64,000 bases of DNA from the NCBI GenBank assembly GCA_035221665.1, contig CM069148.1:49848001-49912000 (forward strand), in the 5' to 3' direction. The notes under the pieces are model-generated. The model did not search any database, was not told where the DNA came from, and saw only the letters and a list, made by a program, of their open reading frames with translations. Positions 7,584-61,388 of this stretch are shown here, one piece after another. The DNA is from Okamejei kenojei. Taxonomy: Eukaryota. The translations under genes were made by a program, and so were the position numbers. Position 1 is the first letter of the stretch. Each line of letters begins with the position of its first letter.

Positions 7584-7617
<34 letters not shown>

Positions 7618-8135: not shown

Positions 8136-8437
8136 TCAACTTAATATCAAAGTGAAATATCTTACATGTTCTTCCATGTTAACATCAATGAAAACTTGGA
8201 TACAATTCTCATCTGTTTCCTTTGGTGTGTAAGTTAAAGTCGTAGTGAAACCAAATTCATTTTTAAATGTCGTGTTTGTAACATATCGATGTTCATCAAA
8301 AGGGTAAGTATCTTTGTACCAGATGATATGGGCTTGTTCTACGGCTGAGCCTCGAACATCACAGGACAGCATTACAGGCTGCCCAGCCTTAGGTTTCTCT
8401 GTACGGCATGTTATCTTTGAGACCACCTTCAACGCTT
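8136..8437 (-). CDS. Host gene terminal coding exon D: divergent Ig-like domain ending in a stop (EALKVV...MLSCDVRG...IIWYK...FTLILS*)
   Basis: Acceptor tatattccaacag, phase 1. LSC and WYK Ig motifs and TLTYTP..D resemble the other exons. TGA at 8138-8136. Confidence 0.8.
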
Positions 8438-8759
8438 CTGTTGGAATATAATTTATAATAAATAATGTAAAACCCATAATGACAGTCACTGGTTATTGAT
8501 ACTCATAATCAACTTATTTTAATCCAAACATAAGACCATAACACATAGGAGCAGAGTTAGGCCATTCAGCCCATTGAGTCCACTCCATCATCCAATCATG
8601 GCTCTCTCAATCCCAATCTCCTGCCTTCTCCCTGTAACCTTTTGATACCCTTGCGTATCACAAATCTATCAATCTCTGCTTTAAAAATACCCAATGACTT
8701 AGCCTCCACAGCCGTCTGTGGCAATAAATTCCACAGATTCACCAATTCCAATGTTTAAA

Positions 8760-9418
8760 GTAAATGACTATTGTCGCTAATATAACCAATGACCTGTCGT
8801 GGACCAACCACATTGATGCGGCTGCCAAGGCGGCTCACCAACACCTCTACTTCATGAGGAGATTTGGTATGTCACCTTGCAGACTTCTGCAGATGCACTG
8901 GAGAAAATATTTGGGAACTGCTCTGCTCAAGATCGCACAATATTGCAGAGAGATGGAGAGGTAGCCCAGTCCATCACACCGACTATCAACTCCATCTATA
9001 CTTCACACTGCCTCGGCAAAGCAGCCAACATAATCAAAGACATGTCCCACCCCGGTAATTCCTTTCTCTCCCTGCTTCTGTCATGGATTAGGTACAGAAG
9101 CTTGAAAGGACACACTACCACTCAGGAGCAGCTTCTTCCCCTCTGTTATCAGGTTTCTGAACAGTCCTTCCATAAGCTAGGGCACTGTCTGATTCACCTC
9201 TACCCTATCGTAGACATTGGACTTTGTCTCTGTAACTGATGGGCTACAATGCTGAGAACGATATCCTGCACTCTGTATCTTCCCCTTTACTCCATCTGTT
9301 TTATTTATGTTTCAACTGATTGTATATATATACGGTATATCTGATCTGCTTGGGTAGCATGCAAAAAAAAGCTTAATACTATACCTTGGTACACATGACA
9401 ATAATAAACCTAAACCAA
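8760..9418 (+). mobile_element. Rex1/Babar-type LINE 3' fragment
   Basis: Translation DLSWTNHI...AHQHLYF and IIKDMSHPG...RYRSL is similar to the 3' end of the element at 47127-49990. Confidence 0.7.
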
Positions 9419-9536
9419 TTTTTCCATCTAAATAGTTGCATTTGGGAGGATATGGAAAATCATGCATTTAGAATAACATATAATCTTCAAAAGATTCAGC
9501 ACAATCCTTCAAATAGCAGTTTCAGGACAAATTTGA

Positions 9537-9755
9537 GGCACAGCGCCAGAGACCCGGGTTCAATCCGGATTATGGGTGCTGTCTGTATGGAGTTCATACA
9601 TTCTCCCCGTGACCACGTGGATTTTATCCGGGTGCTCCTGTTTCCTCCCGCACTCCAAAGATGTGCACGTTTGTAGGTTAATTGCCTTCATGTAAATTGT
9701 CCCTAGAGTAACGGATAGAACTAGTGTACGGGTGTTTACTGGTCAGCGTAGACTT
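9537..9755 (+). mobile_element. V-SINE truncated by Tc1 insertion
   Basis: SINE head and core, ending at the TA before the Tc1 terminus. Confidence 0.7.
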
Positions 9756-9756
9756 A

Positions 9757-10124
9757 CAGTGGCTTGCAAAAATTTTCATACTCCTTGAACTTTTCCACAT
9801 TTTGTCACGTTACAATCACAAACGTAAATCTATTTTATTGGGATTTTATGTGATAGACCAACACAAAGTGGAGCATAATTGTGAAGTGGAAGGAAAATGA
9901 TACGTGGTTTTCAATTTTTTTTACAAATAAAAAACTGAAAAGTGTGGCGTGCAAGAGTATTCAGCCCCGTTTACTCTGATACCCCTAAATAAAATCTAGT
10001 GCAACCAATTGCCTTCAGAAGTCCCTGAATAAGGAATAGGTCCCTGAACCTAATTAGTAAGTAGAGTCCACTTGTGTGTAATCTAATCTCAGTATAAATA
10101 CAGCTGTTCTGTGAAGGCATCAGA
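9757..10124 (+). mobile_element. Tc1 5' terminal fragment (inverted repeat plus 5' UTR)
   Basis: TA|cagtggcttgcaaaa. Reverse complement of ~13950-14291, cut off by a CR1. Confidence 0.9.
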
Positions 10125-12240: not shown

Positions 12241-15200
12241 TCAAATCTGCAATTTGAGAAGGAGAACATTAAATCGGAAGTGGCAGTGATGCAGTTGAAC
12301 AAAGGGGACAATAAAGGCATGAGAGGGGACCTGGCCAAAGTAGACAGGAAAGGGATCCTAGCAGGAATGACGGTGGAACAGCAATGGCAGGAATTTCTGG
12401 GCATAATCCAGAAGACGCAGGATCAGAAAAGATGTATAACACAGCAAACAGTAGCTGGAAGCCAGAGTATTGGGTAACTTTCATAGGACAACAGAAGGAA
12501 ACAAAGCGGGCTGAAAAGATGAAGTATGAGGGGAAACTGGCCAGGAATATAAAGGAAAGTAAAAGCTTCTTTAGATATGTTAAGGGAAAAAGAGTAGCAA
12601 AGTCAAGTGTGGGTCCCTTGAAGGCAGACACGGGTGAAATTATTATGGGCAACAAGGAAATGGCAGAAGAGTTGAATACAGTGGCTTGCAAAAGTATTCA
12701 TACCCCTTGAACTTTTCCAAATTTTGTCACATTACAACCACAAATGTAAATGTATTTTATTGGGATTTTATGTGATAGACCAACACAAAGTGGTGCATAA
12801 TTGTGAAGAGGAAGGAAAATGATACATGGTTTCCAAATTTTATTACAAATAAAAATCTGAAAAGTGTGGCGTGCAAAAGTATTCATCCCCCCTGAGTCAA
12901 TACTTTGTAGAACCTCCTTTCGCTGCAATTACAGCTGCAAGTCTTTTGGGGTATGTCTCTGCCAGATTTGCACATCTAGAGACTGAAATATTTGCCCATT
13001 CTTCTTTGCAAATAGCTCAAGCTCAGTCAGATTGTATGGAGAGCGTCTGTGAACAGCAATTTTCAAGTCTTGCCAGAGATTCTCTATTGGATTTAGGTCT
13101 GGACTTTGACTGGGTAATTCTAACACATGAATATGCTTCGATCTAAACCATTCCATTGTAGTCTGGCTGTATATTTAGGGTTGTTGTCCTGCTGGAAGGT
13201 GAACCCCGCCCCAGTGTCAAGTCTTTTGCAGACTCTAACAGGTTTTCTTCCAAGATTGCCCTGTATTTGGCTCCATCCATCTTCCCATCAACTCTGACCA
13301 GCTTCCCTGTCCCTGCTGAAGAAAAGCATCCCCACAGCATGATGCTGCCACCACCATGTTTCACAGTGGGGATGGTGTGTTCAGGATGATGTGCAGTGTT
13401 AGTTTTCCGCCACACATAGCGTTTTGCATTTAGGCCAAAAACTTCAATTTTGGTCTCATGAGACCAGAGCACCTTCCTCCACATGTTTGCTGTGTCCCCC
13501 ACATGACTTGTGGCAAACTGCAAACGGGACTTCTTATCGCTTTGTTTCAACAATGGCTTTCTTCTTGCCACTCTGCCATAAAGGCCCGATTTGTGGAGTG
13601 CACGACTAATAGTTGTCCCGTGGACAGATTCTCCCACCTGAGCTGTGGATCCCTGCAGCTCCTCCAGAGTTACCATGGGCTTCTTGGCTGCTTCTCTGAT
13701 CAATGCTCTCCTTGCCCGGCCTGTCAGTTTAGGTGGATGGCCATGTCTTAGTAGGTCTGCAGTTGTGCCATACTCTTTCCATTCTCAGATGATGGATTGA
13801 ACAGTGCTCCGTGAGATGTTCAAAGCATGGGATATTTTTTTATAACCTAACCCTGCTTTATACTTCTCCACAACTTTATCCCTGACCTGTCTGGTGTGTT
13901 CCTTGGGCTTCATGATGCTGTTTGTTCACTAATGTTCTCCAACAAACCTCTGAGGCCTTCACAGAACAGCTGCATTTATACTGAGATTAGATTACACACA
14001 AGTGGACTCTATTTACTAATTAGGTGACTTCTGAAGGCAATTTGTTGCACTGGATTTTATTTAGGGGTATCAGAGTAAAGGGGGCTGAATACTTTTGCAC
14101 GCCACATTTTCAGTTTTTTATTTGTAAAAAAATTTGAAAACCATGTATCATGTTCCTTCCACTTTAAAATTATGCACCACTTTATGTTGGTCTATCACAT
14201 AAAATCCCAATAAAATACATTTACGTTTGTGGTTGTAACGTGACAAAATGTGGAAAAATTCAAAGGGTATGAATACTATTGCAAGCCACTGTAGGTGCTT
14301 CGGATCTTTCTTCACTAAGGAAGACACAAACAATCTCCCAGATGTACTGGAGGATCTAAGGAGGTAGAGGAACTGAAAGACATTTTCATTAGGCGAGAAA
14401 TAGTATTGGGCAGGCTAATGGGACTGAAGGGTGACAAATCCCCTGGGCCTGATGGTCTGCATCCCAGGGTCCTCAGGGAGGAGGCTCTAGAAATAGTGGA
14501 CACATTGGTGATCATTTTCCAATGTTCAATCGATTCAGGATCAGTTGCTGTGGATTGGAGGATAGCTAATGTTATCCCACTTTTCAAGAAAGGAGTGAGA
14601 GAGAAAACTGGGAATTACAGACCAGTTAGCCTGACTTCGGTGGTGGGAAAGATGCTGGAGTCAATTATTAAAGAGGTAATAATGGGGCATTTGGATAGCA
14701 GTAAAAGGATTAGTCCAAGTCAATATGGATTTATGAAAGGGAAATCATGCTTGACTAATCTTCTGGAATTTGTTGAGGATGTGACAAGTAAAATGAATGA
14801 AGGGATGCCAGTGGATGTAGTGTATCTAGACTGTCAGAAAGCCTTTGATAAGGTCCCGCACGGGAGACTGGTGACTAAAATTAGAGCACATGGTATTGGG
14901 GGTAGGGTGTTGACATGGATAGAAAATTGGTTGGCAGACCAGAAGCAAAGAGTAGGAGTGAACGGGTCCTTTTCAGAATGGCAGGCAGTGGCGAGTGGAG
15001 TGCCGCAAGGCTCGGTGTTGGGGCCGCAACTGTTTATCATATATATTAATGATTTGGAAGAGGGAATTAGGGAGCAACGCTAGCAAGTTTGCAGATGACA
15101 CAAAGCTGGGTGGCAGTGTGAACTGTGAAGGGGATGTTAGGAGGTAGCAGGGTGACCTGGACAGGATGTGTGAGTGGGCAGATGCGTGGCAGATACAGTA

Positions 15201-16796: not shown

Positions 16797-16808
16797 TTCT
16801 TTCCAGAT

Positions 16809-20920: not shown

Positions 20921-20995
20921 GATGTGTAATGATCTAAATTTCTATTTGAAGCAAACATTCAAAAGACAGTAACTATTGGAAATGAAAACTTTTAC

Positions 20996-21040
20996 CTTCA
21001 TCGACTTCTTCATTGACATCATTTACTATTTTGCCATAAT
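20996..21040 (-). CDS. Microexon m7 (45 nt): DYGKIVNDVNEEVDE
   Basis: ttattattctgcag acceptor, G|gtaaaag donor, 45 nt, phase 1-1. Confidence 0.8.
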
Positions 21041-21842
21041 CTGCAGAATAATAAGAGTTTAAACCTGACATTAGTCAAATCAAATTGCCACTTCCAAAGT
21101 CAGAGTATTAAACACTTGGGCAGGAACATGGATAGGATAGGTTTAGAGAGATATGGGCCGATCGTGGGCAGGTGGGACTAGTTTAGATGGGGCACCTTGG
21201 TTGACAAGGGCAAGTTGGGCCGAAGGGCCTTTTTCCGTGATCTTTGACCATTACTAAGTGTCTCACCAAGCAGATTTTCAACAGCTGAACATCCAAAATC
21301 ATCTATTGCCAACATCAGTAACAAATATAACTAGTTTATTCAACATGAAACTTTGTTGTGAAAGAAATAATCAAATAAATCTGGTGTAATGTTTGAAGAG
21401 ATAACGGGCGGCACAGTGGCGCAGCGGTAGAGTTGCTGCCTCACAGCACCAGAGACCCGGGCTCGATCCTGACCACGGGTGCTGTCGGTGTGGCGTTTCA
21501 ACGTTCCCCCTGTGACCACGTGGGGTTTCTCCGGATACCTCCCACACTCCAAAGACGTGCAGATTTTGAGGTTAATTGGCATTGGTAAAAATTATAAATT
21601 GTCCCTGGAGTATTGGATAGTGTTAGTGTGTGTGATCGTTGGTCGGTGCGGACTCGGTGGGCTAAAGGGCCCGTTTCTGAGCTCTATCTCTAAACTAAAC
21701 ATTCCCTCCAGATGCAGCCTGACCCACCGAGTTTCTCCAGCACTTTGTGTTTTGAAAACATTTGGATCATGTGTAATGATCTAACTTTCTACTTGAAGCA
21801 AACATTCAAAATACAGTAACTATTAGAAATGAAGACTTTTAC

Positions 21843-21887
21843 CTTTATCGACATTTTCATTGACATCATTTTCTATTTTACCATAAT
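21843..21887 (-). CDS. Microexon m6 (45 nt): DYGKIENDVNENVDK
   Basis: ttttattctgcag acceptor, G|gtaaaag donor, 45 nt, phase 1-1. Confidence 0.8.
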
Positions 21888-21920
21888 CTGCAGAATAAAA
21901 AAGAGCTTAATTAAACCTGA

Positions 21921-22789
21921 TGTTTGAGGAGGAACTGCAGATGCTGGAAAAACCGAAGGTAGACAAAAATGCTGGAGAAACTCAGCGGGTGAGGCTGCAT
22001 CTGTGGAGCGAAGGAATAGGGAACGTTTTGGTCAAGACCCTTCTTCACACTGATGTGGGGGGGTGGGGCGGGAAAATGAAGAGGCGGAGAGAGTAGGCTG
22101 TGGGAGAGCTGTGAAGGGGAGGGGAAGGAGGGCGAAAGCAAGGACTACCTGAACCAATTCACTGGTCAATTCGTCCCTTCCCACCCAAATCACCTCCCTC
22201 CTCTGGTACTTTCCCTTGCCACCACAGGAAATGCTACACATGTCGCTTTACCTCTCCCCCTCGACTCCATCCAAGGACCCAAGCAGTCTTTCCAGCTGAG
22301 GCAGAGGTTCACCTGCACCGCCTCCAACCTCATCTATTGCATCCGCTGTTTCAGGTGTCAACTACTCTATATCGGTGAGAGCAAGCGCAGGCTTGTCGAT
22401 CGCTTCGCCCAACACCTCCACTCAGTTCGCAATAACCAACCTGATATCCCGGTGGCTCAGCACTTCAACTCCCCCTCCCATTCCGAATACGACTTTTCTG
22501 TCCTGGGCCTCCTCCATGGCCAGAGAGAATTGGAGGAGCAGCACCTCATATTTCGCTTGGGTAGTTTACACCCCAGCGGTATGAACATTGACTTCTCCAA
22601 TTTTGGGTAGTCCTTGCTTTCACCCTCCTTCCCCTCCCAGCTGTCTCCACCTCTTCCTTTTTTTTCCCGCCACACACCCCCCCCCCCCCACATTTGTCTG
22701 AAGAAGGGTCTCGACCCGAAACGTCGCCTATTCATTCGCTCCATAGATGCTGCCTCACCCGCTGAGTTTCTCCAGCATTTTTGTCTCCC
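21921..22789 (+). mobile_element. Penelope-like element remnant with inverted terminal repeats and GIY-YIG fragment (paralogs ~33336-34213, ~44940-45840)
   Basis: 15-bp flanking duplication cttaattaaacctga at 21906-21920 and 22790-22804. Translates to FTCTASNLIYCIRC..C.LLYIGE..R.L..RF.QH. The two ends are inverted copies. Confidence 0.85.
22698..22725 (+). ncRNA. Minimal hammerhead ribozyme motif of a Penelope terminal repeat (identical cores at ~34119-34146 and ~45749-45776)
   Basis: CTGAAGA, stem II gggtc-tc-gaccc, GAAAC-GTC with palindromic ACGT as helix III. This matches the known minimal HHR form of Penelope-like elements. Confidence 0.7.
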
Positions 22790-23364
22790 CTTAATTAAAC
22801 CTGACATTAGTCAAATCAAATTGCCACTTCCAAAGTCAAAGTATTAAACACTTGGGTAGAAACATGGATAGGATAGGTTTAGAGGGATATGGGCCAATCG
22901 TGGGCAAGTGGGACTAGTTTAGATGGGGCACCCTGGTCGACAAGGGCAATTTGGGCCGAAGGGCCTTTTTCCATGATCTATGTCTCACCAAGCAGATTTT
23001 AAACAACTGAACATCCAAAATCATCTATTGTCAACATCAGTAACAAATATATCTAGTTTATTCAACATGAAACTTTGTTGTGAAAGTAATAATCAAATAA
23101 ATCTGGTGTAATGTTTGAAGAGCTAACGGGCAGCACAGTGGCGCAGCGGTAGAGTTGCTGCCTCACAGCACCAGAGACCCGGGCTCGATCCTGACCACTG
23201 TGGCTGTCTGTGTGGAGTTTGGACGATCCCCGTGACCACGCGGGGTTTCTCCGGAGTGCCGCAAAGCTCGGTGTTGGGGCCGCAACTGTTTACCATATAT
23301 ATTAATGATTTGGAAGAGGGAATTGGGAGCAACACTAGCATGTTTGCGGATGACACAGAGCTGG

Positions 23365-26057
23365 GTGTGTGAATAACGTTCCATTCGGAGAAGTGTTTTT
23401 TTTGGGAGGGGGGTTTTTGCGGAAGCCGCTGATTGGTGGGAAGTGGACTAGGGTAAGCAGCTGATTGGCAGTCAGATTTCAGCAATTTGTAGTGTACTTT
23501 GTATTGTGTTGATATTGTATACTGATATTGTATTCTGTGTAAGGGAGGGGGAGTATCAAGACCAAGGCAGTGTACTGGTGTGGATGTCAGATGTGGGAGG
23601 TCAGGGAATCTGATAGCCCTCCAGACGTCCCTATCTGCGCCAGGTGTGTCGATATAGGGCTCCTAAAGGACTGTGTTAGGAACCTGGAGCAGCAGCTCGA
23701 TGACCTCCGTCTCCTCAGGGAGAGTGAGGAGGTAATAGAGAGGAGCTCCAGGGAGGTAGTCACTCGCAGACCACAGGAGGCAGACAAGTGGGTCACAGTT
23801 AGGAAGGGCAAGGGGCAGAGGCAGGGGCTAGAGAGTACCTCTGTGACTGTACACCTGGAAAATAGGTACTCGTGTTTGAGTACGATTGGAGGGGACAGCC
23901 TACCTGGGGGCAGCAACAACGGCCGGTCCTCCGGCACAGAGACCGGCCCTGATGCTCAGAAGGGTAGCAAAAAGAGGAGGGCAATTGTAATAGGGGACTC
24001 TATAGTTAGGGGGTCGGATGGAAGATTCTGTGGACGCAGTCGGGAGACCCGGATGGTAGTTTGCCTCCCTGGTGCCAGGGTCTCAGATGTGTCAGAACGT
24101 GTCCAAAATATTATGAAAAGGGAGGAAGAAGAGCTTGATGTTGTGGTACACATAGGTACCAATGACATAGGCAGAAAAAGAGAAGAGGTCCTGAAAGGAG
24201 AATTTAGGGAGTTGGGGGGAAAGTTAAGGAGAAGGAACAAAAGGGTAACGATTTCAGGATTACTGCCTGTGCCACGTGACAGTGAGAGTAGGAATGAAAT
24301 GAGGTGGAGGATAAATGCGTGGCTGAGGGACTGGTGCAGTGGGCAGGGATTCAAGTTTCTTGATCACTGGGACCTCTTTTGGGGAAGGCATGATATGTAC
24401 AAAAAGGACGGGTTGCACTTGAACCCGAGGGGGACCAATATCCTTGCAGGGAGATTTGCCAAAGCTACTGGGGAGACTTTAAACTAGAAAGGCTGGGGGG
24501 AGGGACTCGGGTAGAGGGGGCTAGGGGACAGGGTGTGGGGCAAGAGATTAGTGATAATCTTTCAAAACTTTCAAAACTCTTTAGATTCTGGAGTAGTTCC
24601 TGAGGATTGGCGGGTAGCAAATGTAACCCCTCTTTTTAAGAAGGGAGGGAGAGAGAAAACGGGGAATTACAGACCAGTTAGTCTCACATCGGTAGTGGGG
24701 AAACTGCTAGAGTCAGTTATTAAAGATGGGATAGCAGCACATTTGGAAAGTGGTGAAATCATTGGACAAAGTCAGCATGGATTTACGAAAGGTAAATCAT
24801 GTCTGACGAATCTTGTGGAATTTTTCGAGGATGTAACTAGTAGCGTGGATAAGGGAGAACCAGTGGATGTGGTATATCTGGACTTCCAGAAGGCTTTCGA
24901 CAAGGTCCCACATAAGAGATTAGTATACAAACTTAAAGCATACGGTATTAGGGGTTCAGTATTGATGTGGATAGAGAACTGGCTGGCAAAGAGTAGGAGT
25001 AAACGGGTCCTTTTCACAATGGCAGGCAGTAACTAGTGGGGTACCGCAGGGCTCAGTGCTGGGACCCCAGCTATTTACAATATATATTAATGATCTGGAT
25101 GAGGGAATTGAAGGCAATATCTCCAAGTTTGCGGATGACACTAAGCTGGGGGGCAGTGTTCGCTGTGAGGAGGATGCTAGGAGACTGCAAGGTGACTTGG
25201 ATAGGCTGGGTGAGTGGGCAAATGTTTGGCAGATGCAGTATAATGTGGATAAATGTGAGGTTATCCACTTTGGTGGCAAAAACAGGAAAGCAGACTATTA
25301 TTTAAATGGTGGCCGATTAGGAAAAGGGGAGATGCAGCGAGACCTGGGTGTCATGGTACACCAGTCATTGAAAGTAGGCATGCAGGTGCAGCAGGCAGTG
25401 AAAAAAGCGAATGGTATGTTAGCTTTCATAGCAAAAGGATTTGAGTACAGGAGCAGGAGGATCTACTTCAGTTGTATAGGGTCTTGGTGAGACCACACCT
25501 GGAGTATTGCGTACAGTTTTGGTCTCCAAATCTGAGGAAGGACATTATTGCCATAGAGGGAGTGCAGAGAAGGTTCACCAGACTGATTCCTGGGATGTCA
25601 GTACTGTCTTATGAAGAAAGACTGGATAAGACTCGGTTTATACTCTCTGGAATTTAGGAGATTGAGAGGGGATCTTATAGAAACTTACAAAATTCTTAAG
25701 GGTTGGACAGGCTAGATGCAGGAAGATTGTTCCCGATGTTGGGGAAGTCCAGGACAAGGGGTCACAGCTTAAGGATAAGGGGGAAATCCTTTAAGACCGA
25801 GATGAGAAAGACTTTTTTCACACAGAGAGTGGTGAGTCTCTGGAACTCTCTGCCACAGAGGGTAGTTGAGGCCAGTTCATTGGCTATATTTAAGTTGGAT
25901 GTGGCCCTTGTGGCTAAGGGGATCAGAGGGTATGGAGAGAAGGCAGGTACGGGATACTGAGTTGGATGATCAGCCATGATCATATTGAATGGCGGTGCAG
26001 GCTCGAAGGGCTGAATGGCCTACTCCTGCACCTAATTTCTATGTTTCTATGTTTCTA
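23365..26057 (+). mobile_element. CR1-type LINE, subfamily C, with 5' UTR and ORF1, endonuclease region deleted, and RT remnant (paralog ~34790-37492)
   Basis: ORF1 is followed ~60 bp after its stop by a jump into RT at ~24546. FADD motif and ctatgttt tail. Confidence 0.9.
23570..24487 (+). CDS. CR1 ORF1p: CxxC..CxxC zinc finger, coiled coil and SGNH esterase domain
   Basis: Motifs CGCQMW...CARC, IVIGDSIVRG, HIGTNDIG and DGLHLN. Open for 305 codons; start codon uncertain. Confidence 0.8.
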   Translation: MYWCGCQMWEVRESDSPPDVPICARCVDIGLLKDCVRNLEQQLDDLRLLRESEEVIERSSREVVTRRPQEADKWVTVRKGKGQRQGLESTSVTVHLENRYSCLSTIGGDSLPGGSNNGRSSGTETGPDAQKGSKKRRAIVIGDSIVRGSDGRFCGRSRETRMVVCLPGARVSDVSERVQNIMKREEEELDVVVHIGTNDIGRKREEVLKGEFRELGGKLRRRNKRVTISGLLPVPRDSESRNEMRWRINAWLRDWCSGQGFKFLDHWDLFWGRHDMYKKDGLHLNPRGTNILAGRFAKATGETLN

Positions 26058-29000: not shown

Positions 29001-29890
29001 GGAGATAATATATTAAGCATCTGGATAAACAGGTCTGATCAGGAACAGTCAACATGGATTTTGTGCCCGGAAGGTCATGTTTGACAAACCTTCTTGAATT
29101 TTTTGAAGAGGTTACTAGGGAAATTGATGAGGGTAAAGCAGTGGATGTTGTCTATATGGATTTCAGTAAGGCCTTTGACAAGGTTCCCCATGGAAGGTTG
29201 GTTAAGAAGTTTCAATCTTTGGGTGTTATATGCGGAGTAGCAAGATGGATTCAACATGGCTGAATGGGAGATGTCAGAGAGTAATGTGGATGGCTGTTTG
29301 TCAGGGTTGTAAGCCGTGGACCAGTGGGGTGCCTCAGGGATCTGTGTTGGGTCCACTGTTTGTTTTGTCATGTACATCAATGATCTGGATGATGGGGTTG
29401 AAATTGGATAAGTAAGTATGCAGATGATATTAAGATAGGTGGTGTTGTGGATAATGAAGTAGATTTTCAAAATCCACAGAGATATTTGGGCCATTTGGAA
29501 AAGTGGGCTGAAAGATGGCAGATGGAGTTTAATGCTGTTAAGTGTGAAGTGCTACATCTTGGCAGGATAAATCAAAATAGGATGTACTTGGGAGGGAATT
29601 GAGGAATGCTGTGGAACAGAGGGATCTAGGAATAACTGTGCATAGTTCCCTTGAAGGTGGAAATCACATGTAAGATAGGGTGGTAAAAGAAAGCTTTTGG
29701 TGTGCTGGCCTTTATAAATCAGAGCATTGAATATAGGAGTAGGGAAGTAATGTTAAAATTGTACAAGGCATTGGTAAGACCAATTCTGGAGTATGGTTTA
29801 CAATTTTGGTCGCCTAATTATAGGAAGGATGTCAACAAAATAGATCACAATGAATGGCCTCCTCCTGCACCTATTTTCTATGTCTATGAT
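26058..29890 (+). mobile_element. CR1 subfamily A (from ORF2 start), interrupted by a Penelope RT fragment and fused by deletion to a subfamily B tail (paralog ~37493-41418)
   Basis: YFNARR..K.DEL, SETWL and GDFN endonuclease motifs. Junction aaatag|atcacaatg at ~29843. Confidence 0.9.
27142..28626 (+). mobile_element. Penelope-like element RT fragment (paralog ~38592-40165)
   Basis: Motifs FYLLPKIHK, DVQSLYTSIP, GVAMGTPMGPSY and RYIDD. Inserted in the CR1 at ..gctaa|aagaagatatgagg. Confidence 0.85.
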
Positions 29891-29940
29891 GTGTAATGAT
29901 CTAAATTTCTATTTGAAGCAAACATTCAAAAGACAGTAAC

Positions 29941-32369: not shown

Positions 32370-32395
32370 TAACTATTGGAAATGAAAACTTTTAC

Positions 32396-32440
32396 CTTCA
32401 TCGACTTCTTCATTGACATCATTTACTATTTTGCCATAAT
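32396..32440 (-). CDS. Microexon m5 (45 nt): DYGKIVNDVNEEVDE
   Basis: ttctgcag acceptor, G|gtaaaag donor, 45 nt, identical to m7. Confidence 0.72.
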
Positions 32441-33258: not shown

Positions 33259-33303
33259 CTTTATCGACATTTTCATTGACATCATTTACTATTTTACCAT
33301 AAT
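33259..33303 (-). CDS. Microexon m4 (45 nt): DYGKIVNDVNENVDK
   Basis: ttctgcag acceptor, G|gtaaaag donor, 45 nt, phase 1-1, open frame. Confidence 0.72.
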
Positions 33304-42300: not shown

Positions 42301-43988
42301 GTAAATTGAATAGATTAAAGGCCGATACATCCCCAGGCCAGATAGCTGCATCCAGAGTATCTAAAGGAAGTAGCTCAGAAATAGTGGATGCATTAGTGAT
42401 AATCTTTCAAAAACTCTTTAGATTCTGGAGTAGTTTCCTGAAGGATTGGCGTTGGTAGCAAATGTAGACCCCACTCTTTTTAAGAAGGGGAGGGAGAGAG
42501 AAAACGGGAATTACAGACCAGTTAGTCTAACATCGGGTAGTGGGGAAACTGCTAGAGTCAGTATTAAAGATGGTGATAGCAGCACATTTGGAAAGTGGTG
42601 AAATCATTGGACAAAGTCAGCATGGATTTACAAAAGTAAATCATGTCTGACGAATCTTGTGGAATTTTTTCGAGGATGTAACTAGTAGCGTGGATAAGGG
42701 AGGAGAACCAGTGGATGTGTTAACTGGACTTCCAGAAGGCTTTCGACAAGTGGTCCCACATAAGAGATTAGTATACAAACTTAAAAGCATAGCGGTATTA
42801 GGGGTTCAGTATGATGTGGATAGAGAACTGGCAGGCAAACAGGAAGCAAAGAGTAGGAGTAAACGGATCCTTTTCACAATGGCAGGCAGTAACTAGTGGG
42901 GTACCGCAGGTCAGTGCTGGGGACCCCAGCTATTTACAATAATATTAATGATCTGGATGAGGGAATTGAAGGCAATATCTCCAACTAGTTTGCGGATGAC
43001 ACTAAGACTGGGGGGCAGTGTTCGCTGTGAGGAGGATGCTAGGAGCACTGCAAGGTGATTGGATAGCTGGGTGAGTGGGCAATTGTTTGGCAGATGCAGT
43101 ATATGTGGATAAATTGAGGTTTTATCCACTTTCGTGGGCAAAAGAACAGGAAAGCAGGGATATTATTTAAATGGTGGGCTCGATTAGGAAAAGGGGAGAG
43201 AGAGATGCAGCGAGATGGGTGTCATGGTACACCAGTCATGAAAGTAGGCAAGCAGGTTGCAGAGGCAGCTGAAAAAAGCGAATTTAAATTGGTATGTTAG
43301 CTTTCATAGCAAAAGGCTTTGAGTACAGGGCGGCGAGGGTTCTACTTTCAGTGTACAGGGTCTTGGTGATTGAGACCACACCTGGAGTGTATTGCGGGCA
43401 GTCTTTGGTCTCCCAATCTGAGTGACGGACATTATTGCCATAGAGGGAGTGCAGAGAAGGTTCACCAGACTGATTCCTGGGATGTCAGGACTGTCTTATG
43501 TAAGAAAGACTGGATTGACTCGTGTTTATACTCTCTGGAATTAGGAGATTAAGAGGGGGATTTATAGGAAACTTACAAAATTCTTAAGGGGTTGGTGAAG
43601 GCTAGATGCAGGAAGATTGTTCACGATGTTTGGAGGAAGAAAGTCCAGGACTAAGGGGTCACCAGTCTTAAGGATACGGGGAAATCTTTAAGACCGTGAT
43701 GAGAAAGGATTTCTCACATGAGAGTGGTGAGGTCTCTGGAACTCTCTCGCCACAGAGGGTAGTGAGGCCAGTTCATTGGCTATATTTAAGAGTGAGTTGG
43801 ATGTGGCCCTGTGATAAGGGGTCAGAGGTATGGAGAGAAGGCAGGTTAGAGGATACTGAGTTGGATGATCAGCTCATGATCATATTGAATGCGGTGCAGG
43901 CTCGAAGGGTCTGAATGGCCTACTCCTGCACTTAGCTTTCTATGTTTCTATGTTTACTAACTATTGGACGTAATGAAACTTTCTGGAC

Positions 43989-44034
43989 CATTCTTCGACT
44001 TCTTCATTGACATCATTTACTATTTTGCATTAAT
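43989..44034 (-). CDS. Microexon m3 (degraded or error-laden copy of the DYGKIVNDVNEEVDE type)
   Basis: Clear homology to m5/m7 with an intact acceptor, but several indels and a scrambled donor context. Either a pseudo-exon or sequencing error. Confidence 0.4.
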
Positions 44035-44862
44035 CTGCAGAATAATAAGAGTTTAACCTGACATTAGGTCAACATCAAATGCCACTTCCAAAGTCAGAGT
44101 ATTAAACACTTGGGCAGCGGAACATGGATAGGATTTCGGATAGGTTTAGAGAGATATGGGCCGATAGTGGGCAGGTGGGACTAGTTTAGATGGGGGGCAC
44201 CTTGGTTGGGACAAGGCAAGTTGGGCCGAAGGGCCTTTTTCCGTGATCTTTGAACCATTACTAAGTGTTCACCAAGCAGATTTTCAACAGCTGAACATCC
44301 AAAATCATCTATTGCCAACATCAGTAACAAATATAACTAGTTTATTCATACATGAAACTTTTGTTTGTGAAAGAAATAATCAAATAAATCTGGTGTAATG
44401 TTTGAAGAGATTAACGGGCGGCACAGTGGCGCAGCGGTGTAGAGTTGCTGCCTCACAGCACCAGAGACCCGGGCTCGATCCTGACACGGGTGCTGTCGGT
44501 TGTGTGGCGTTTCAACGTTCCCCTGTGACCCACGTGGGGTTTCTCCGGATACCTCCCTCACTCCAAAGACGTGCAGATTTTGAGGTTAATTTGGCATTGG
44601 TAAAAATTAATAATTTGTCCCTGGAGTATTGGATAGTGTTAGTGTGTGTGATCGTTGGTCGGTGCGGACTCGAGTGGGCTAAAGGGCCCGTTTCTGAGCT
44701 CTATCTCTAAACTAAAACATTCCCTCAGATGCAGCCTGACCACCGAGTTTCTCCAGCACTTTGTGTTTTTGAAATCATTTGGATCATGTGTAATGATCTA
44801 ACTTTTCTACTTGAAGGCAAACATTCAAAATACAGTAACTATTAGAAATGAAGGACTTTTAC

Positions 44863-44909
44863 CTTTATCGGACATTTTTCATTGACATCATTTTCTATTT
44901 TACCATAAT
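44863..44909 (-). CDS. Microexon m2 (47 nt as assembled, probably 45 nt): DYGKIENDVNENVDK-type
   Basis: Identical to m6 except for two one-base homopolymer extensions. Splice sites are intact. It lies in the noisy region. Confidence 0.55.
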
Positions 44910-45893
44910 CTGCAGAATAAAAAGAGCTTAATTAAACTGATTGTTGGAGGAGGAACTGCAGATGCTGGAAAAAACCGATCCCTCCAGGTAGACAAAAATG
45001 CTAGTGAAACTCAGCGGGGTGAGGCTGCATTCTGTGGAGCGAGCGAATAGGGAACGGTTTTGGTCAAGACCTTCTTCACACTGATGTGGGGGGGTGGGGC
45101 GGGAAAATGAAGAGGCGGAGAGAGTAGGCTGTGGGAGAGCTGTGAAGGGGGAGGGGAAGGAGGGCGAAAGCAAGGACTACCCTGAACCAATTCACTGGTC
45201 AATTCGTCCCTTCCCACCCAAATCACCCCCTCCTCTGGTACTTTCCCTTGCCACCACAGGAAATGCTACACATGTCGCTTTACCTCTCCCCCTCGACTCC
45301 ATCCAAGGACCCAAGCAGTCTTTCCAGCTGAGGCAGAGGTTCACCTGCACCGCCCTCCAATCTCATCTATTGCATCCGCTGTTTTCAGGTGTCAACTACT
45401 CTATATCGGTGAGGGCAAGCGCAGGCTTGTCGATCGCTTCGCCCAACACCTCCACTCAGTTCGCAATAACCAACCTGATATACCGGTGGCTCAGCACTTC
45501 AACTCCCCCTCCCATTCCGAATCCGACTTTTCTGTCCTGGGCCTCCTCCATGGCCAGAGAGAATTGGAGGAGCAGCACCTCATATTGCGCTTGGGTAGTT
45601 TACACCCCAGCGGTATGAACATTGACTTCTCCAATTTTGGGTAGTCCTTGCTTTCACCCTCCTTCCCCTCCTAGCTGTTCCACAGCCTACTGTCTCCACC
45701 TCTTCCTTTTTTCCCCCGCCACACCCCCCCCCCCCCCCCCACCTTTGTCTGAAGAAGGGTCTCGACCCGAAACGTCGCCTATTCATTCGCTCCATAGATG
45801 CTGCCTCACCCGCTGAGTTTCTCCAGCATTTTTGTCTCCCCTTAATTAAACCTGACATTAGTCAAATCAAATTGCCACATCCTAAGTCAAAGT

Positions 45894-54859: not shown

Positions 54860-54960
54860 ACTTTGTGTTTTGAAAACATTTGGATCATGTGTAATGATCT
54901 AAATTTCTACTTGAAGCAAACATTCAAAATACAGTAACTATTGGAAATGAAGACTTTTAC

Positions 54961-54993
54961 CTTTATCGACATCATTTTCTATTTTGCCATAAC
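54961..54993 (-). CDS. Microexon m1 (33 nt): GYGKIENDVDK
   Basis: Minus strand reads ttttattctgcag|GTTATGGCAAAATAGAAAATGATGTCGATAAAG|gtaaaag. Phase 1-1, in frame with exon C. Confidence 0.8.
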
Positions 54994-55039
54994 CTGCAGA
55001 ATAAAAAAAGAGCTTAATTAAACCTGATGTTCTGGATTC

Positions 55040-55500
55040 AGTCCTGGGTTCGATCCCGACCTCGGGTGCAGTCTGCGTGGAGTTTGCATGTTCTCCCTGT
55101 GATCACGTGGGTTTCCTCCCACATCCCAAAGACGTATAGGTTTGTACGTCTATTTTCCTTGTATTTACAGAGGTATTGGCCCTCTGTAAATTGTCCCTAG
55201 TGTGTAGGGAGTGGATGAGAAAGTGGGATAACATAGAAGTAGTGTGAACGGGTGACTGATGGCCGGCGTGGACTCGGTGGGCCGAAGGGCCTGTTTCAAT
55301 GCTGTATCAACCAATGTAGAAATGTAGTGCAACATATAAATATAAAATATAAAAGGTTTTTTCCGGGTGCTCCGGTTTCTTCCCAAGCTCCAAAGGTTAG
55401 TCGGTTAATCGGCTGCAGTCCCCAGTGTAGGATAGTGCTATGGTACGGGGTGATCGCTGGTCGGCACAGACTCGGTGACCCGACGGGCCTGTTTCCTGTA
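55040..55500 (+). mobile_element. Two V-SINE fragments
   Basis: gggttcgatccc B-box, V core and gggccgaagggcctgttt tails. Confidence 0.7.
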
Positions 55501-56170
55501 CAAAGAATAGTACACTACAGGGACTGTCCCTTCGGCCCACAATGTCTGTGCTGAACTTGACGCATTGATAAACTAGTCTCCTTTGCCTGCATGTGATCCA
55601 TATTCCTCCATTCCCTGTGCCTAAAATATTCAAAAGCTTCATGAACGCTGCTATTGTACCTCCATGTTCCAGGTACCCATGTAGCAAACTTGCCCTGCAC
55701 ATCACCGTTAACTTAGCCCACCTCACTTTTAAAGCTATACCCTCTAGTCTTTGACATTTCCACCCTGGGGAAAAAGGTTTTGACTGTCTACCCCATTATT
55801 ATTTTATATACTTCTATCAGGTCTCCCTTCAGACTCTGGCGTTCCAGAGAAAACAATTCAAGTTTGTCCAACCTCTCCCTTTAGCAGAAACCCACTAAAC
55901 TAAGCAACATTTTGATAAAAAAAGACACAAAATGCTGGAGTAACTCAGTGGGACAGGCAGCATCTCTGGAGAGAAGGACTGAACAAGGGTCTCCATCCGA
56001 AATGTCACCCATTCCTTCTCTCCAGAGATGGAGTTACTCCAGTATTTTGGGTCTATCTTCGGTTTAAACCAGCACCTGCAGTTCCTTCCTTTGATAAACC
56101 TCTTCTGCGTCTTTTCTACATCCGTCTTATGATATGATGTGGCTGCAGATTTTACTGCAACAATATTCAC

Positions 56171-56503
56171 CTTTTAATTTTAAAGTGTAACTGGTAGCGA
56201 TGGCGGTGCTTGAAGTTTCAGAATGAAGGACTTTCATCTTAAATTCTTTTCCATGATCATCAGCAGCTGGTGTGAATTTCCACTTGGATGAACATGAATA
56301 GGAACCATTCTCTGTGTCCAGTTCAATTGGTCCCAGAGTAATTCCTGCTTTGAATAGATCTTCGATTTTTTCAAATTCTTTGAACCAGAATATTGAATTT
56401 CCTTCAGGATAGAACCCGTAAGCTTTGCAGGAGAGTGTTACTTCCTTTCCCATTTCGGGGCAAAGTGGATCGACCTCAATTGCTGTAAGCTTTGGCAATG
56501 AAG
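56171..56503 (-). CDS. Host gene internal exon C: Ig C1-set domain lacking the F-strand Cys (ASLPKL...LSCKAYGFYP...IFW...GSYSCSS...EFKMKVLH)
   Basis: Acceptor cccttttctccag and donor G|gtgaat flank 333 nt, phase 1-1. C1 motifs are present, but Met replaces the second canonical Cys. Confidence 0.9.
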
Positions 56504-56659
56504 CTGGAGAAAAGGGGAAAAAAAGGTTAATCTGAACGTGTAATTTAAAGAACACTAGAATTCAGAGAAATATTAACAAAAAATTGAGAAAACAAGGGAT
56601 GAAACATTGAAAGTTCTGAGGAACCATCTGGGTCTTTCTATCTGTTTTGTACCACAAAA

Positions 56660-57912
56660 CGCAGATAGATAAGGTGGTCAAAAGGGTCATTGGCCCATTG
56701 GCCTTCATCAGTCAAAGTATTGAGTATAGAAGTTGGGAGGTCATGCAGTTGTATAAGACGCAAGTCGTGCAGTTGGTGAGGCCACATTTTGAGTATTGTG
56801 TTCTGTTCTGGGCACCATGTGATATTAAAGATATTGTCAAGCTTGAAAGGATTCAGAGAAGATTTATGAGGATGTTGCCAGGACTAGAGGGTCTGAGCTA
56901 TAGGGAGAGGTTGATTAGGCTGGGACTCTATTCCTTGGAGTGCAGATGCTGGGCCCGTTGCTGTTTGTCATCTATATCAATGATTTAGAGGAGAACACAT
57001 AGTAAGATTAACAAGTTTGCAGATGATACTAAAGTTGGTGGTTTTGCAGATACTGAAGATGGTAGCAGGTTGTTGATCGATTGGCCAGGTGGGCTGAGGA
57101 TTGGTTGACGGAATTTAATACGGAGAAATGTGAGTTGTTGCATTTTGGGAAGTATAACATGAGCAGGACCAAAACAGTGAATGGTCGGGCTCTGAGAAGT
57201 GTTGTAGAGCAGAGGTGTCTAGGAGTTCAGGTGCAAGGTTACTTGAAGGTGGTCGCAGGTAGATTGTGTGGTCAAAAAGGCTTTTGACACATTGGCCTTC
57301 ATTAGTCAGAGTATTGAATATAGAAGTTGGTAGGTCATGTTGCAATTGTATACAAGTTGGTGAAGCCGCATTTAGAGTATTGTGTTCTGTTCTGGGCACC
57401 AGGTTACAAGAAAAATGTTGGCAAGTTGGAAAGGGTACACAGAAGGTTTACGAGGACGTTGCCACAACTAGAGGGTCTGAGCTATAGGGAGATATTGAGC
57501 AGGCTGGGACTTTATTCCTTGGAGTGCAGGAGGATGAGGGGGATCTTATCGAGATGTATAAAATCAAGAGAGGAATAGATCGGGTAGATGCACAGAGTTT
57601 CTTGCCCAGAGTGGGGGAATCGAGGTCCAGAGGACCTAGGTTCAAGGTGAAGGGGAAAAGTTTTAATAGGAATCTGAGGGGTAACCTTTTCACACAAAGG
57701 ATGGTGGGTGTGTGGCACAAGCTGCCAGAGGAGGTAGTTGCGGCCGGTACTAATGCAACGTTTAAGAAACAATTGTACAAGTACATGGATGGGACAGGTT
57801 TGGAGGGATATGGACCATACGCGACTGGCGGGACCAGTGTGGCTGGGACATGTTGGCCGGTGTGCTCAAGTTGGGCCAAAGAGCCTCTTTCCACACTGTA
57901 TCACTCTATGAC
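56660..57912 (+). mobile_element. Older rearranged CR1 ORF2 3' fragments
   Basis: LVRPHFEYC, FADD and YRERL..LGLYSLE motifs, with a ctatga tail. Confidence 0.8.
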
Positions 57913-57982
57913 TCTATCTCATGGAATGGCTTTTCAAGAGTCAAGAGAGTGATTGTCATATATACCAAAATGGAAAGGCTTA

Positions 57983-58476
57983 AGGGGCTGTCCCACTGCG
58001 GCGACCTAATCTGCGAGTTTAGACAAGTTTGTTCGACATGTGGTCCTAGGAGGTCCTATGAGTTCACTGGAACTCTCCTTCATGCTCGAGGGAAGTTCCA
58101 GAATACTCGCGGCCTCAGCTAGGTTGCGGAAATTTTTTCAGCATGTTCAAAAATGTGCCGCGAGTATAATTTGGTCGGCATGCTTCTTAACTCGTAGTGC
58201 AGTGGAGTGGACTTGTTATTTAGTTACAGGCAGTCGAGGGCAGCCCTTCGCTGACCGGGCATTTTGATTGGCTCATTGGAGTTTTTCAGACTAGGGAAAA
58301 CCGACTGGTAGGTTAAATGCATGCTAAACTTTATTATAATTCTTAAAAGTGTCTCCACTCCTTCTCCCCCTCCGTGCTCTCTAAAGGACTTACCGTACGC
58401 TATGCAGCGTCCTTTACCTGCCTCTTCATCGCGGGTGTGAATTTCAGACAGCGCTCCCCGCTTTCCCTGGCCCCCG

Positions 58477-58520
<44 letters not shown>

Positions 58521-58625
58521 ACAGTCGATCCAGCTCGAGGTTTCCCAGGCGAGTGCCCTCGAGCATGAAGGTCGAAGGCACTCTTCTTAACTCGCGGATT
58601 AGGTCGCTGTAGTGGGCCAGCCCCT
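57983..58625. mobile_element. PIF/Harbinger-type MITE containing a (GT)n microsatellite (~58478-58519)
   Basis: ~37-bp imperfect TIRs aggggctgtcccactgcggcgacctaatctgcgagtt / aactcgcggattaggtcgctgtagtgggccagcccct, flanked by TTA on both sides. Confidence 0.75.
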
Positions 58626-58737
58626 TTACTGTATCTGCAGCAGCATAACGGGTCCGTAAACCCAGTACTCAATAAGTAAACAAAACAACAAACATCAATA
58701 TTTGAGATTTCACTCTAAATACCAGAGGTGCACACAA

Positions 58738-58825
58738 ATAGCCACACACACATAGCCACACACACACATAGCCACACACATGCACATAGCCACACATAGC
58801 CACAAAAAGCCACACGCACACATAC
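58738..58825. repeat. (cacatagcca)/(ca)n compound microsatellite
   Basis: Direct inspection. Confidence 0.8.
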
Positions 58826-59369
58826 AGATTAATCTGTCTGAAGAAGGCTTCTGACCCACAAAGTCCCCTGTCCATTCCCTCCACAGATGCTGTGTGACAT
58901 GTTGGGTTACTCAAGCACTTTGTGTTTCACTTTTCAATGACTGTGGATAAAAATAATACATTAGATAAATTTAGTGGTTTTCTCTGGAACGGCAGTGATT
59001 GTGAGGAGACCTGATAGAGGTACATTATATCGGGAGAGGCATAGATAGGGTAGACAGTCAGAGCCTGTGTCTGGGAAAAAAAAGGATAGAAAAATCAAAT
59101 ACTAGAGGCCTTAGTTTTAAGGTGAGAGGGGCAAATTTTAAAGATGTGTGGGTCCATTTTTTTAATATAGAAGGGGGTGAGTGTCTGGAACGCATTACTG
59201 GGTATGGTGGTTGAGGCAGAAAGGATAGTGGCATTTAATAGACTTTGGATAGGCACATGGATATGGAGGGATATGGATTATGTGCATGCAGATGAGTGGG
59301 CCAGACATTGTGGGTCGAGCGGTTGTGCCATACTGTTCTACGTTCTATATCATTAGATAATTCATACGT

Positions 59370-59730
59370 TCATAAGTTATAGGAGCATAATTAGGCCATT
59401 CAGCCCATCTAGTCTACTTTGCCATTCAATCATAGTTGATCTATCTTTCCCTCTCAACCCAATTCTGCTGCCTTCTCCCCATAACCCCCGACACCCGTAC
59501 TAATCCACCATCCGTACTAATGAAGAATCTGCCAATCTCCGCTTTAAAAATATCCATTGATTTGACCTTCACCACCATTGGTGGCAATGAATTCCACAGA
59601 TTCACCACCCTCTGACTAAATAAATTCCTCCTCATCTCCTTCCTAAAGGTATGTGCTTTTATTCTGAGGCTGTGGCCACTGGTCCTCGACTTTCCCACTG
59701 GTGGAAACATCCTCTCCACTTTAACTCTAT
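59370..59730 (-). mobile_element. CR1 3' fragment (similar minus-strand fragments at ~60510-60915 and ~8530-8745)
   Basis: Translation FSQRVVNLWNSLP plus the 3' UTR. Confidence 0.75.
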
Positions 59731-59806
59731 CCATAATAAATTACCAACTGAAGACTGTTTAAGAAGTTCAGATGAAAGCAGTCTTGGCTTAAACGTTGTT
59801 ACATAC

Positions 59807-60115
59807 CCATTTCACCTGCAACCCAATCAGTGTGCAATGGCTCAGTCAGGCTGAGATGGGACACTTGGCATGTATATTTGGCTGTTGCCCCAGCCCTGGT
59901 GGGGACTATCTCCACGTCACTTGCCACATTATAGAGACCATCCTGACCAATTATTGGCTCAGCAACTTTGAAATTTTGCAACGTCTCTTCATTTTTCAGC
60001 CATTTCACTGTGATGTCTCTGGGGTAAAACGCATTTATTTGACAGCTTATCGTCATGGGTACACCAGCAATTATCTTCTCTGCTTTGCACTTTATTAAGT
60101 CCACTTTTGGAATGG
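59807..60115 (-). CDS. Host gene internal exon B: canonical Ig C1-set domain (AIPKV...ISCQINAFYPRDITVKW...DGLYNV...YTCQVSH)
   Basis: Acceptor ttttttatttcag and donor G|gtatgt flank 309 nt, phase 1-1. FYP, W and YTCxVxH motifs resemble tapasin/B7-H6/SIRP/MHC-type C1 domains. An alternative in-frame donor G|gtgaaa would end the exon at 59816. Confidence 0.92.
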
Positions 60116-61010
60116 CTGAAATAAAAAACAAGACTTCAAACACAAGCCAAGATAGCAAGGCCCCGACCCAAAACGTCACCCATCCTTTTCTCCAGAGATG
60201 CTGCCTGACCCGCTGAGTTACTCCAGCACATTGTGCCTATCTTTGGTATAAACCAGCGTCTGCAGTTCCTTGTTTCTATATTCAAACACAAGCAGTTTCG
60301 CAAAACTATGGATTAGATGTTTGGCTTTTCCATGATCAATGGCCAGAAACGCAATCACCCATGTTTTTGAAAACTATGAAAAAGACACATATAATTTTTG
60401 AAAAATGAATTACTTCATTAACCCCAATACAATTGTATCCTATTATTGTTTTTGTTTTTTTTTCAAAACAATTCTAAATCATTCCCCTTGTAAAAGGCAG
60501 TATAGAAGGCAGTATTAGGCCATTCAGTCCATCGACTCAATTCCGCCATTCAATCATGGTAGATCTATTTTCCCTCTCAACCCCATTCTCCTGCCTTCTC
60601 CCCATAACCTTTCACACTATTACTAATCAAGAACCTATAAATCCCAACTTTGAAAAACCCAATTGGCTTCCACAGCTGTCTGTAGCAATGAACTCCACCG
60701 AGTCACCAACCTCTGACTAAAGAAATTCCTCCTCATCTCCATTCTAAAGGTACATCCTTTTACTCTGAGCCTGGTCCTGGAGTCTCACATTAGTGGAAAC
60801 ATCTTTTCTACATCCACTCTATCCAGGCCTTTCATTATTCAGTAAGTTTCATTGAGATCCCCCCCTCGTCCTCCTAAACTCCAGCGAGTACAGACCCAGA
60901 GCCTTCAAACGCACTGCGTACATTAATGGTTGTGGTATGATATTTAAGACAAATAAGTAGGCACTCTGCATCCTCTGTCAATGCAAGGCTTAGATGGAAG
61001 TATTATATAC

Positions 61011-61388
61011 CTGCAATCATTAACTTGATTTCTCTCTCCTGGTCACTGGTGCCGCTGTGATGTACTTTACATGTGTAAAGCGAGTCTTGATCTTGCTGTA
61101 TATCAGGCACTATCTCAAGTTCACTAGTGATGCTGTAGGATTCATCATCATGCTTCATCTCACTGATGTAATGTTTATATGTGGACATCTCCCCGTCACC
61201 ACCGTGAATAATTGTCCTGTTGTCCTCCTCCATTCGAACTATTTCTTCCGCCTCCATGTTCTTTCTCTTTCGTTGCCACGTGATACGTAAAGGCCTTGGT
61301 TTAAACCCAGTGACTGAACAGATCAAAGATGCAGATTTATTGTGAATGATGCAAGAGGGTTTGAAGATGTTTAAAACCTTGGGTGGCA
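61011..61388 (-). CDS. Host gene internal exon A: Ig C1-set domain with a long acidic insertion (VPPKV...LICSVTGFKP...ITW...LYTCKVHH)
   Basis: Acceptor ttttattttctcaaag and donor G|gtatat flank 378 nt, phase 1-1. The translation has B-strand Cys, GFxP, C-strand Trp and YxCxVxH, the C1-set signature. Confidence 0.9.

Follow-up and report, generated by a model that had tools for sequence, protein, structure and literature searches.

The 3' half of a putative B7-H6-like immunoglobulin superfamily gene in the skate Okamejei kenojei, with a candidate hinge encoded by an array of microexons

Introduction

The pairing of B7-H6 with its receptor NKp30 is one of the most ancient among natural-killer ligands and receptors, and it reaches back to cartilaginous fish, the oldest animals to possess it. 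Human B7-H6 (NCR3LG1) consists of a V domain, a C1 domain, a transmembrane (TM) segment and a cytoplasmic tail. Here we describe what appears to be the 3' half of a B7-H6-like gene of the immunoglobulin superfamily (IgSF) in the skate Okamejei kenojei. It lies on a stretch of 64,000 nucleotides (nt) of assembly GCA_035221665.1 (contig CM069148.1, positions 49,848,001 to 49,912,000), which is called the window below and is numbered from its own first letter. The window contains no N runs and all the exons of the gene are on its minus strand. Three exons for C1-set immunoglobulin (Ig) domains are followed by an array of eight microexons of 33-47 nt, spread over 39 kb of long interspersed nuclear element (LINE) and Tc1 debris, and then by an exon for a terminal Ig-like domain.

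A spacer made of duplicated short exons is known from human IGHG3, where two to five duplicated hinge exons between CH1 and CH2 produce hinges of 32, 47, 62 or 77 amino acids (aa) (PMC8674132). The skate array shares with this hinge the tandemly duplicated short exons between C1-set exons, the 15-residue steps and the variable copy number. However, the IgG3 hinge is rich in Pro and Cys, is disulfide-bonded, has a repeat of about 200 bp and varies in length by allele and not by splicing, whereas the skate units are acidic, lack Pro and Cys (except in Rhinoraja, which has one Cys per unit), lie up to ~10.5 kb apart and belong to gene models that suggest exon skipping. The IgG3 hinge may thus be regarded as the closest functional analogue, by analogy and not by homology.

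The second described system of interest is the elasmobranch gene UrIg2 (PDB 9DMX), a plastic multi-C1 gene which grows by duplication of adjacent exon pairs and which carries batoid-specific short 'hinge' exons (PMC12227049). It differs from the present gene in its VJ-type head, in a TM segment at the C-terminal end and in the proline-rich composition of its hinge exons.

Results

The four Ig exons were delimited by reading splice sites and are all in phase 1. The C1-set domain of exon A (61388-61011, 378 nt, phase 1-1) carries an acidic insert, and its N-R-T sequon is conserved; exon B (60115-59807, 309 nt, with its donor at 59807) encodes a second C1-set domain, and exon C (56503-56171, 333 nt) encodes a third one which lacks the second canonical Cys. 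Exon D (8437-8136) encodes the terminal Ig-like domain, which ends in ...TLILS before the TGA stop codon at 8138-8136, and an AATAAA poly(A) signal is located at 8042-8037, 93 nt 3' of the stop codon. Exons A, B and C score 51, 59.6 and 30.5 bits respectively against the Pfam C1-set family (PF07654, gathering cut-off 21 bits), whereas the Ig match of exon D (17.2 bits) is sub-threshold. The B-strand and F-strand Cys, the C-strand Trp and the Y-x-C-x-V-x-H motif are all present in exons A (YTCKVHH) and B (YTCQVSH). The F-strand Cys is missing from exon C, which reads FKMKVLH at the motif position, and in exon D the motif is missing and the canonical Cys residues are not conserved. An AlphaFold2 model of exon D, computed from an alignment of ten orthologues, is a six-strand Ig sandwich with a mean predicted local distance difference test (pLDDT) score of 82. 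The top Foldseek matches of this model are generic C1/I-set domains (MHC class II alpha2, HLA-DM, beta2-microglobulin and NCAM), none of them with an expect value (E) below 0.001. The arrangement proposed in an earlier sequence-only reading of this DNA, namely three C1 exons, a microexon array and a terminal Ig exon with a stop codon on the minus strand, is confirmed by the Pfam scores, the splice sites and a motif scan.

That reading had placed the end of exon B at 59816, before a GTGAAA donor, and this has to be corrected. The donor in use is GTATGT (at 59806), 9 nt further downstream, and we placed the end of the exon at 59807 because contigs derived from RNA and the orthologous sequence agree on it; the translation of exon B ends in ...WVAGEM and the orthologues read WVAGE(I/M)ASLP. 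We also noticed that a Cys in the A-strand region of exon D (KITC; residue 10, window 8139-8435) is invariant in all eleven sequences, whereas the canonical B-strand Cys is not. This residue may take part in an interchain or interdomain bond.

A HMMER scan with exon B over 1.84 billion representative sequences returned one outstanding match (E 9e-75), an 'uncharacterized protein' of Amblyraja radiata, LOC116984368. When the longest isoform of this locus was compared with the window by tblastn, exons A-D were found in order with 94.5, 77, 89 and 83% identity, and exon A is 94.5% identical to residues 668-795 of XP_032894415. The corresponding values are 93, 77, 82 and 82% for Leucoraja erinacea (LOC129705966) and 84, 72, 78 and 82% for Rhinoraja longicauda (LOC144602191), while orthologues of sawfish, electric ray and shark are 50-68% identical to the window. 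For exon D, identity is 82-83% with the orthologues of the three skates and 51-63% with those of sawfish, electric ray and shark. Its C-terminus is also kept, as ...LILS here and as (L/M/F)(I/K/Q/M)L(S/H) in the orthologues. The window therefore shares with the A. radiata group the order of the exons, a high identity per exon (72-94% to the skate proteins), the C1-C1-C1 series, a linker of 15-aa units (DYGK.END...) and the terminal Ig domain with its C-terminus. It differs from this group in lacking the one or two extra C1 exons of the other skates, and the number and sequence of the units vary by species.

Orthologues annotated as 'uncharacterized protein' were found in RefSeq for Amblyraja, Leucoraja, Rhinoraja, Hemitrygon, Hypanus, Pristis, Narcine, Heptranchias and Cetorhinus. 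These proteins and their isoforms are computed, automatic models without a name or a publication. Their layout comprises a signal peptide, one or two V-C1 units, a TM exon, a degenerate Ig domain, the A-B-C domains, the linker and the terminal domain. For the V-C1 head (of Hemitrygon akajei) the best solved-structure match is human B7-H6/NCR3LG1 (6YJP, 4ZSO and 3PV6, E about 3e-32), with which it also shares a constant domain of C1 type. The orthologues do not reproduce the architecture of human B7-H6, as their TM exon precedes a further four to six Ig domains, the hinge and the terminal Ig domain. On the basis of these comparisons, the window would hold only the 3' half of an elasmobranch B7-H6-like IgSF gene, the orthologue of LOC116984368. 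No trace of the head of the gene and no leader exon were found in the window at 61389-64000, which is mostly LINE.

Among the other solved structures, the next-best matches after B7-H6 for the tandem C1 domains are the C1 domains of SIRP-alpha and SIRP-gamma (PDB 2WNG and 4I2X, E 3e-19 and 5e-18). The SIRPs differ in that their V head is joined to two C1 domains with nothing in between, their TM segment is C-terminal and they have no microexon linker. Membership in UrIg2 was considered and rejected, as 9DMX was matched with E 5e-17 by exon B and 1.5e-5 by exon A, below many IgG, IgM and SIRP chains.

The species' own protein is absent from the protein databases searched, and a homologue search with exon C alone returned no short proteins, hence no transcript-derived open reading frame (ORF) of this species. 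In the literature searched we found no named or published gene of this architecture and no paper on the family. The sequence-only reading is thus borne out in proposing an immune-type member of the IgSF whose spacer is a modular repeat made of phase-1 microexons, and the gene is indeed uncharacterised. Its description as a hidden, stand-alone gene does not hold, as it would be the 3' half of a larger gene which, although unstudied, is already present in the automatic models of related rays with the linker units included.

The repeat peptide pattern has seven matches in the window, all of them on the minus strand and in the interval between exons C and D, and a blastn search with one microexon copy and its flanks recovered an eighth, degraded copy. 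Six of the eight copies are intact (m1 and m4-m8), where each is preceded by ...TTATTCT(G/T)CAG and followed by GTAAAAG..., has a length of 33 or 45 nt and is in phase 1-1; these exact limits agree with the AG/GT sites, lengths divisible by 3 and common phase that had been claimed for six of the copies. The first unit, m1 (54993-54961), is 33 nt long, starts with GT and encodes (G)YGKIENDVDK. The other intact units are all 45 nt long: m4 (33303-33259) encodes (D)YGKIVNDVNENVDK, m5 (32440-32396) encodes (D)YGKIVNDVNEEVDE, m6 (21887-21843) encodes (D)YGKIENDVNENVDK, m7 (21040-20996) is identical to m5, and m8 (16186-16142) encodes (D)NGKVENVVNEEVDE and has its orthologous counterpart in the final unit, DNGKVENDVSEEVN(E/K), of Amblyraja and Leucoraja. 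The intact units are of low complexity, carry a net charge of -1 to -5 each and contain no Pro, Cys or hydrophobic runs. The two remaining copies are broken as assembled. In m2 (44909-44863, 47 nt) two single-base insertions break the frame, and in m3 (44034-~43989) a lost base produces an in-frame TAA and the donor is a weak GTCCAG.

Copies that were not recently duplicated are 82-91% identical in the exon, 62-80% in the upstream 60 nt and 87-97% in the downstream 60 nt, the last range leaving out m5, whose flank is interrupted. The conserved downstream flank would fit an intronic element that helps to define such small exons, or alternatively it may merely reflect the history of duplication. 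An EF-hand-like calcium loop was considered for the repeat and was rejected, as inspection by eye gave no fit.

Self-megablast located a tandem segmental duplication at 20970-45893 with 2.2 copies of a unit of ~11.4-11.5 kb, at offsets of 11400 and 11545 and with 97% and 92% identity. Its copies extend over 20970-32370, 32370-43958 and, for the partial third one, 43958-45893. Each copy contains one 'a' and one 'b' microexon ~0.8 kb apart, and the remainder is derived from repeats including LINE fragments. The array has expanded through tandem duplication of a genomic unit with two microexons, which now measures 11.4 kb. Over 6.4 kb of one comparison between copies, 38 mismatches were observed against 124 gap openings, 107 of which are single-base, and over 5.2 kb of the second comparison there were 122 mismatches against 216 gap openings, where the gaps are again mostly single bases. 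In genuine divergence substitutions predominate, and an excess of 1-bp indels is typical of long-read consensus error. The pattern points to a poorly polished stretch, with errors of the consensus in one or more of the copies, and m2 is located in the indel-rich third copy. Because the differences between copies are dominated by indels, the defects of m2 and m3 and the exact copy number are not reliable. The sequence-only reading had assigned these two units to an error-rich region, which agrees with the 1-bp indels, although m3 also carries a stop codon as assembled. It had also counted eight microexons, and eight copies are indeed found in the assembly, but this count depends on the duplication and the number is uncertain.

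Comparison with other species gives the splicing model of the sequence-only reading its strongest backing. In the RefSeq proteins, linker units of 15-16 aa stand precisely where the last C1 domain gives way to the terminal Ig domain, with four units in Amblyraja, six in Leucoraja, eight in Rhinoraja and four each in Hemitrygon and Hypanus. For example, isoforms X1, X2 and X3 of A. radiata have four or three 15-aa units (DYGKKENDVNE(D/K)(A/V)DE ... DNGKVENDVSEEVNE) and are exactly one unit apart, while some isoforms of L. erinacea lack one or two of the six units. The eight units of R. longicauda form alternating 16- and 15-aa pairs, and what distinguishes the isoforms of this species is either a single unit or a single residue at a junction. 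The stingray linkers consist of four neutral 15-aa units, with unit-skipping isoforms in Hemitrygon, and in Hypanus a second gene carries three basic repeats of 32 aa. Differences by whole units are thus present among the RefSeq isoforms of four batoids (Amblyraja, Leucoraja, Rhinoraja and Hemitrygon). In sawfish, electric ray and two sharks, a single linker of ~20 aa occupies the same position.

Since these last animals have a single short linker, the arrays represent lineage-specific expansions. The short linker is the ancestral state, and skates and stingrays enlarged their arrays separately, as a rule by pairs of units; the repeats are more alike within a species than between species. The linker is acidic in skates and either neutral or basic in stingrays, so that its charge differs by lineage, whereas the 15-aa step is retained. 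Because the charge is not conserved and the repeat step is, a role in length or flexibility is favoured over one in chemistry, and the spacer is probably a flexible hinge whose length matters more than its chemistry. We also noticed that in R. longicauda Cys replaces Tyr in every linker unit (a TAT/TGT change), which gives eight hinge cysteines and makes interchain disulfides possible in this species.

Four sequencing runs of the same organism were aligned to 54900-60200, and although none of them is on record as RNA, spliced contigs are present. In runs X1 and X4 a single contig (2522 and 2529 nt, respectively) covers 60122-59807 and then directly 56503-56169, which proves the splice junction between exons B and C. 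The contigs of 2.5 kb also extend more than 1.7 kb upstream of exon B. Past exon C, the contigs continue for 153 nt (X1 and X4) or 58 nt (X11) and do not follow the intron. In all three, the alignment runs 2 nt beyond exon C, so that the next letters are GT, and this fits m1 and does not fit exon D (AA) or m2-m8 (AT). An unassembled exon starting with GT would fit this continuation equally well. From the continuation and the integrity of the units we infer that microexons are used in this species.

The three sets of contigs were observed to differ in their agreement with the window. The X11 contigs, which likewise align over 60122-59807, match exons B and C with 0-1 mismatches. They end precisely where exons B and C meet, possibly because both exon B donors are in use or because the site is heterozygous. 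In X1 and X4, about 3% of the positions in exon C and 1.6% of those in exon B deviate from the window, which would reflect either high allelic polymorphism or transcripts of a paralogue.

Discussion

We consider it likely that the window contains the 3' half of a B7-H6-like gene with three C1 exons, a hinge or tether encoded by cassette microexons and a terminal Ig-like exon. Each 45-nt cassette of phase 1-1 would add 15 acidic, low-complexity residues, and the microexons as a whole would supply a flexible hinge or tether that links the C1 rod to the terminal domain. The exon anatomy, the orthology, the occurrence of these units in the gene models of other species and the duplication are all observed directly, whereas the spacer function and the use of all the units in this species are inferred. 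Because the units are symmetric (phase 1-1 and multiples of 3 nt) and lie between Ig exons of the same phase, any subset of them should keep the frame, so that the hinge could change its length in 15-residue steps. Within an animal this may occur by exon skipping, and between species it may occur by tandem duplication of the two-microexon genomic unit. In this genome, insertions of retroelements have enlarged that unit to 11.4 kb, and 2.2 copies of it are present.

Several observations weigh against this interpretation. As assembled, m2 and m3 are unusable, which leaves six units of eight, and no microexon piece is among the contig alignments listed, which omit pieces that short. The isoforms of the other species are computed, and the RNA support behind them was not open to inspection. 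Furthermore, Amblyraja, Leucoraja and Rhinoraja have one or two C1 exons between exon C and the array that are not present here. A search of the window for these extra exons gave only paralogous matches to exons A-C, and the intron between exon C and m1 (54994-56170) is only 1.2 kb long and contains no remnant of such an exon. The locus thus differs from the skate models that support the interpretation, or it could be a paralogue.

The most serious alternative concerns the number of units and not the gene itself. In this case the gene would be real and the count of eight an assembly artefact, where the 11.4-kb unit was mis-counted or poorly polished and m2 and m3 are intact in the animal. The excess of indels between copies (38 against 124 and 122 against 216), the retroelement ORFs that are longer in copy 1 and more fragmented in copy 2, and the partial third copy all point in this direction. 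However, related skates have 4-8 units arranged in pairs, so that several copies are expected, and the assembled exons B and C agree with the X11 contigs. We regard an artefactual count as a substantial possibility, although one that falls somewhat short of an even chance. A further alternative is that most of the microexons are dead relics in a transposon-filled intron, with transcripts using only m1 and/or m8 or joining exon C to exon D directly. The repeat-filled introns of up to about 10.5 kb between units, the broken state of m2 and m3, and the lack of a displayed contig with a microexon would be accounted for in this way. This is difficult to reconcile with the six units that keep their frame, their AG/GTAAAAG sites and their polypyrimidine tracts, or with the conserved flanks of the microexons. 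In addition, all units are represented in the orthologue models, in which no more than one or two are skipped together, and the contig continuation past exon C begins with GT and not with the AA of exon D. Decay of most of the array is therefore considered improbable.

The position of the TM exon raises a different question, which is whether the C1 exons, together with the linker and exon D, are a secreted gene in their own right that starts with a separate leader, such that the RefSeq models would be read-through fusions. A TM exon amid a chain of disulfide-bonded Ig domains is topologically implausible, and our alignment of ten orthologues shows that the canonical cysteines of domains A and B are invariant or nearly so and that the N-x-T sequon of exon A is conserved. 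Because these cysteine pairs and the sequon are conserved downstream of the TM exon, the C-terminal half is probably extracellular, and a reading in which its Ig domains lie in the cytoplasm is doubtful. These same features would suit a separate secreted gene, but the models of nine species all join the head and the tail in frame, the 2.5-kb contigs reach well upstream of exon B, and 61389-64000 shows no leader exon. Moreover, the mid-protein TM exon of 38 aa is skipped in frame in one RefSeq isoform of Hemitrygon akajei (X6), in which both halves are kept. An independent gene is hence given little credence. Where a model has the TM exon as well as the tail, it may unite splicing choices that no single transcript makes.

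Returning to a single B7-H6-like gene with a microexon-encoded hinge, a more detailed scheme can be drawn. The gene would produce a membrane-anchored product together with large secreted forms in which the mid-gene TM exon is skipped, and the 45-nt cassettes would set the reach of the terminal Ig domain in 15-residue steps. The arrays would expand independently, with concerted evolution, in skates and stingrays, possibly co-evolving with NKp30-like receptors. We offer this scheme tentatively and think it unlikely to hold in every part.

The gene is important because it represents a conserved elasmobranch member of the B7-H6/NKp30 system that has so far been unstudied and that would combine a B7-H6-like head and a C1 rod with a hinge that is evolvable and assembled from exons, followed by a terminal domain that is unique. 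The gene may also serve as a natural example of a spacer whose length is tuned by the duplication and skipping of symmetric microexons, a solution at which human IgG3 would have arrived independently. For genome annotation, the locus illustrates that motif and phase together recover 45-nt exons that lie up to about 10.5 kb apart in repeat-rich introns.

Other features of the window

ORFs in the 39-kb interval between m1 and m8 carry RVT_1 (the reverse transcriptase of LINEs), GDSL esterase and Tc1-type transposase domains. The GDSL esterase domain is of a kind that occurs in some LINE ORF1 proteins. The Tc1-type transposase domain was located at 13143-13703 by a domain scan of the ORFs, outside the tandem duplication. 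Downstream of the 3' end of the gene, two stretches at 1639-2840 and 6800-7850 were observed to be GC-rich (0.51-0.56) and of low complexity with many proline codons, and these may represent a CpG island or the promoter of the next gene.

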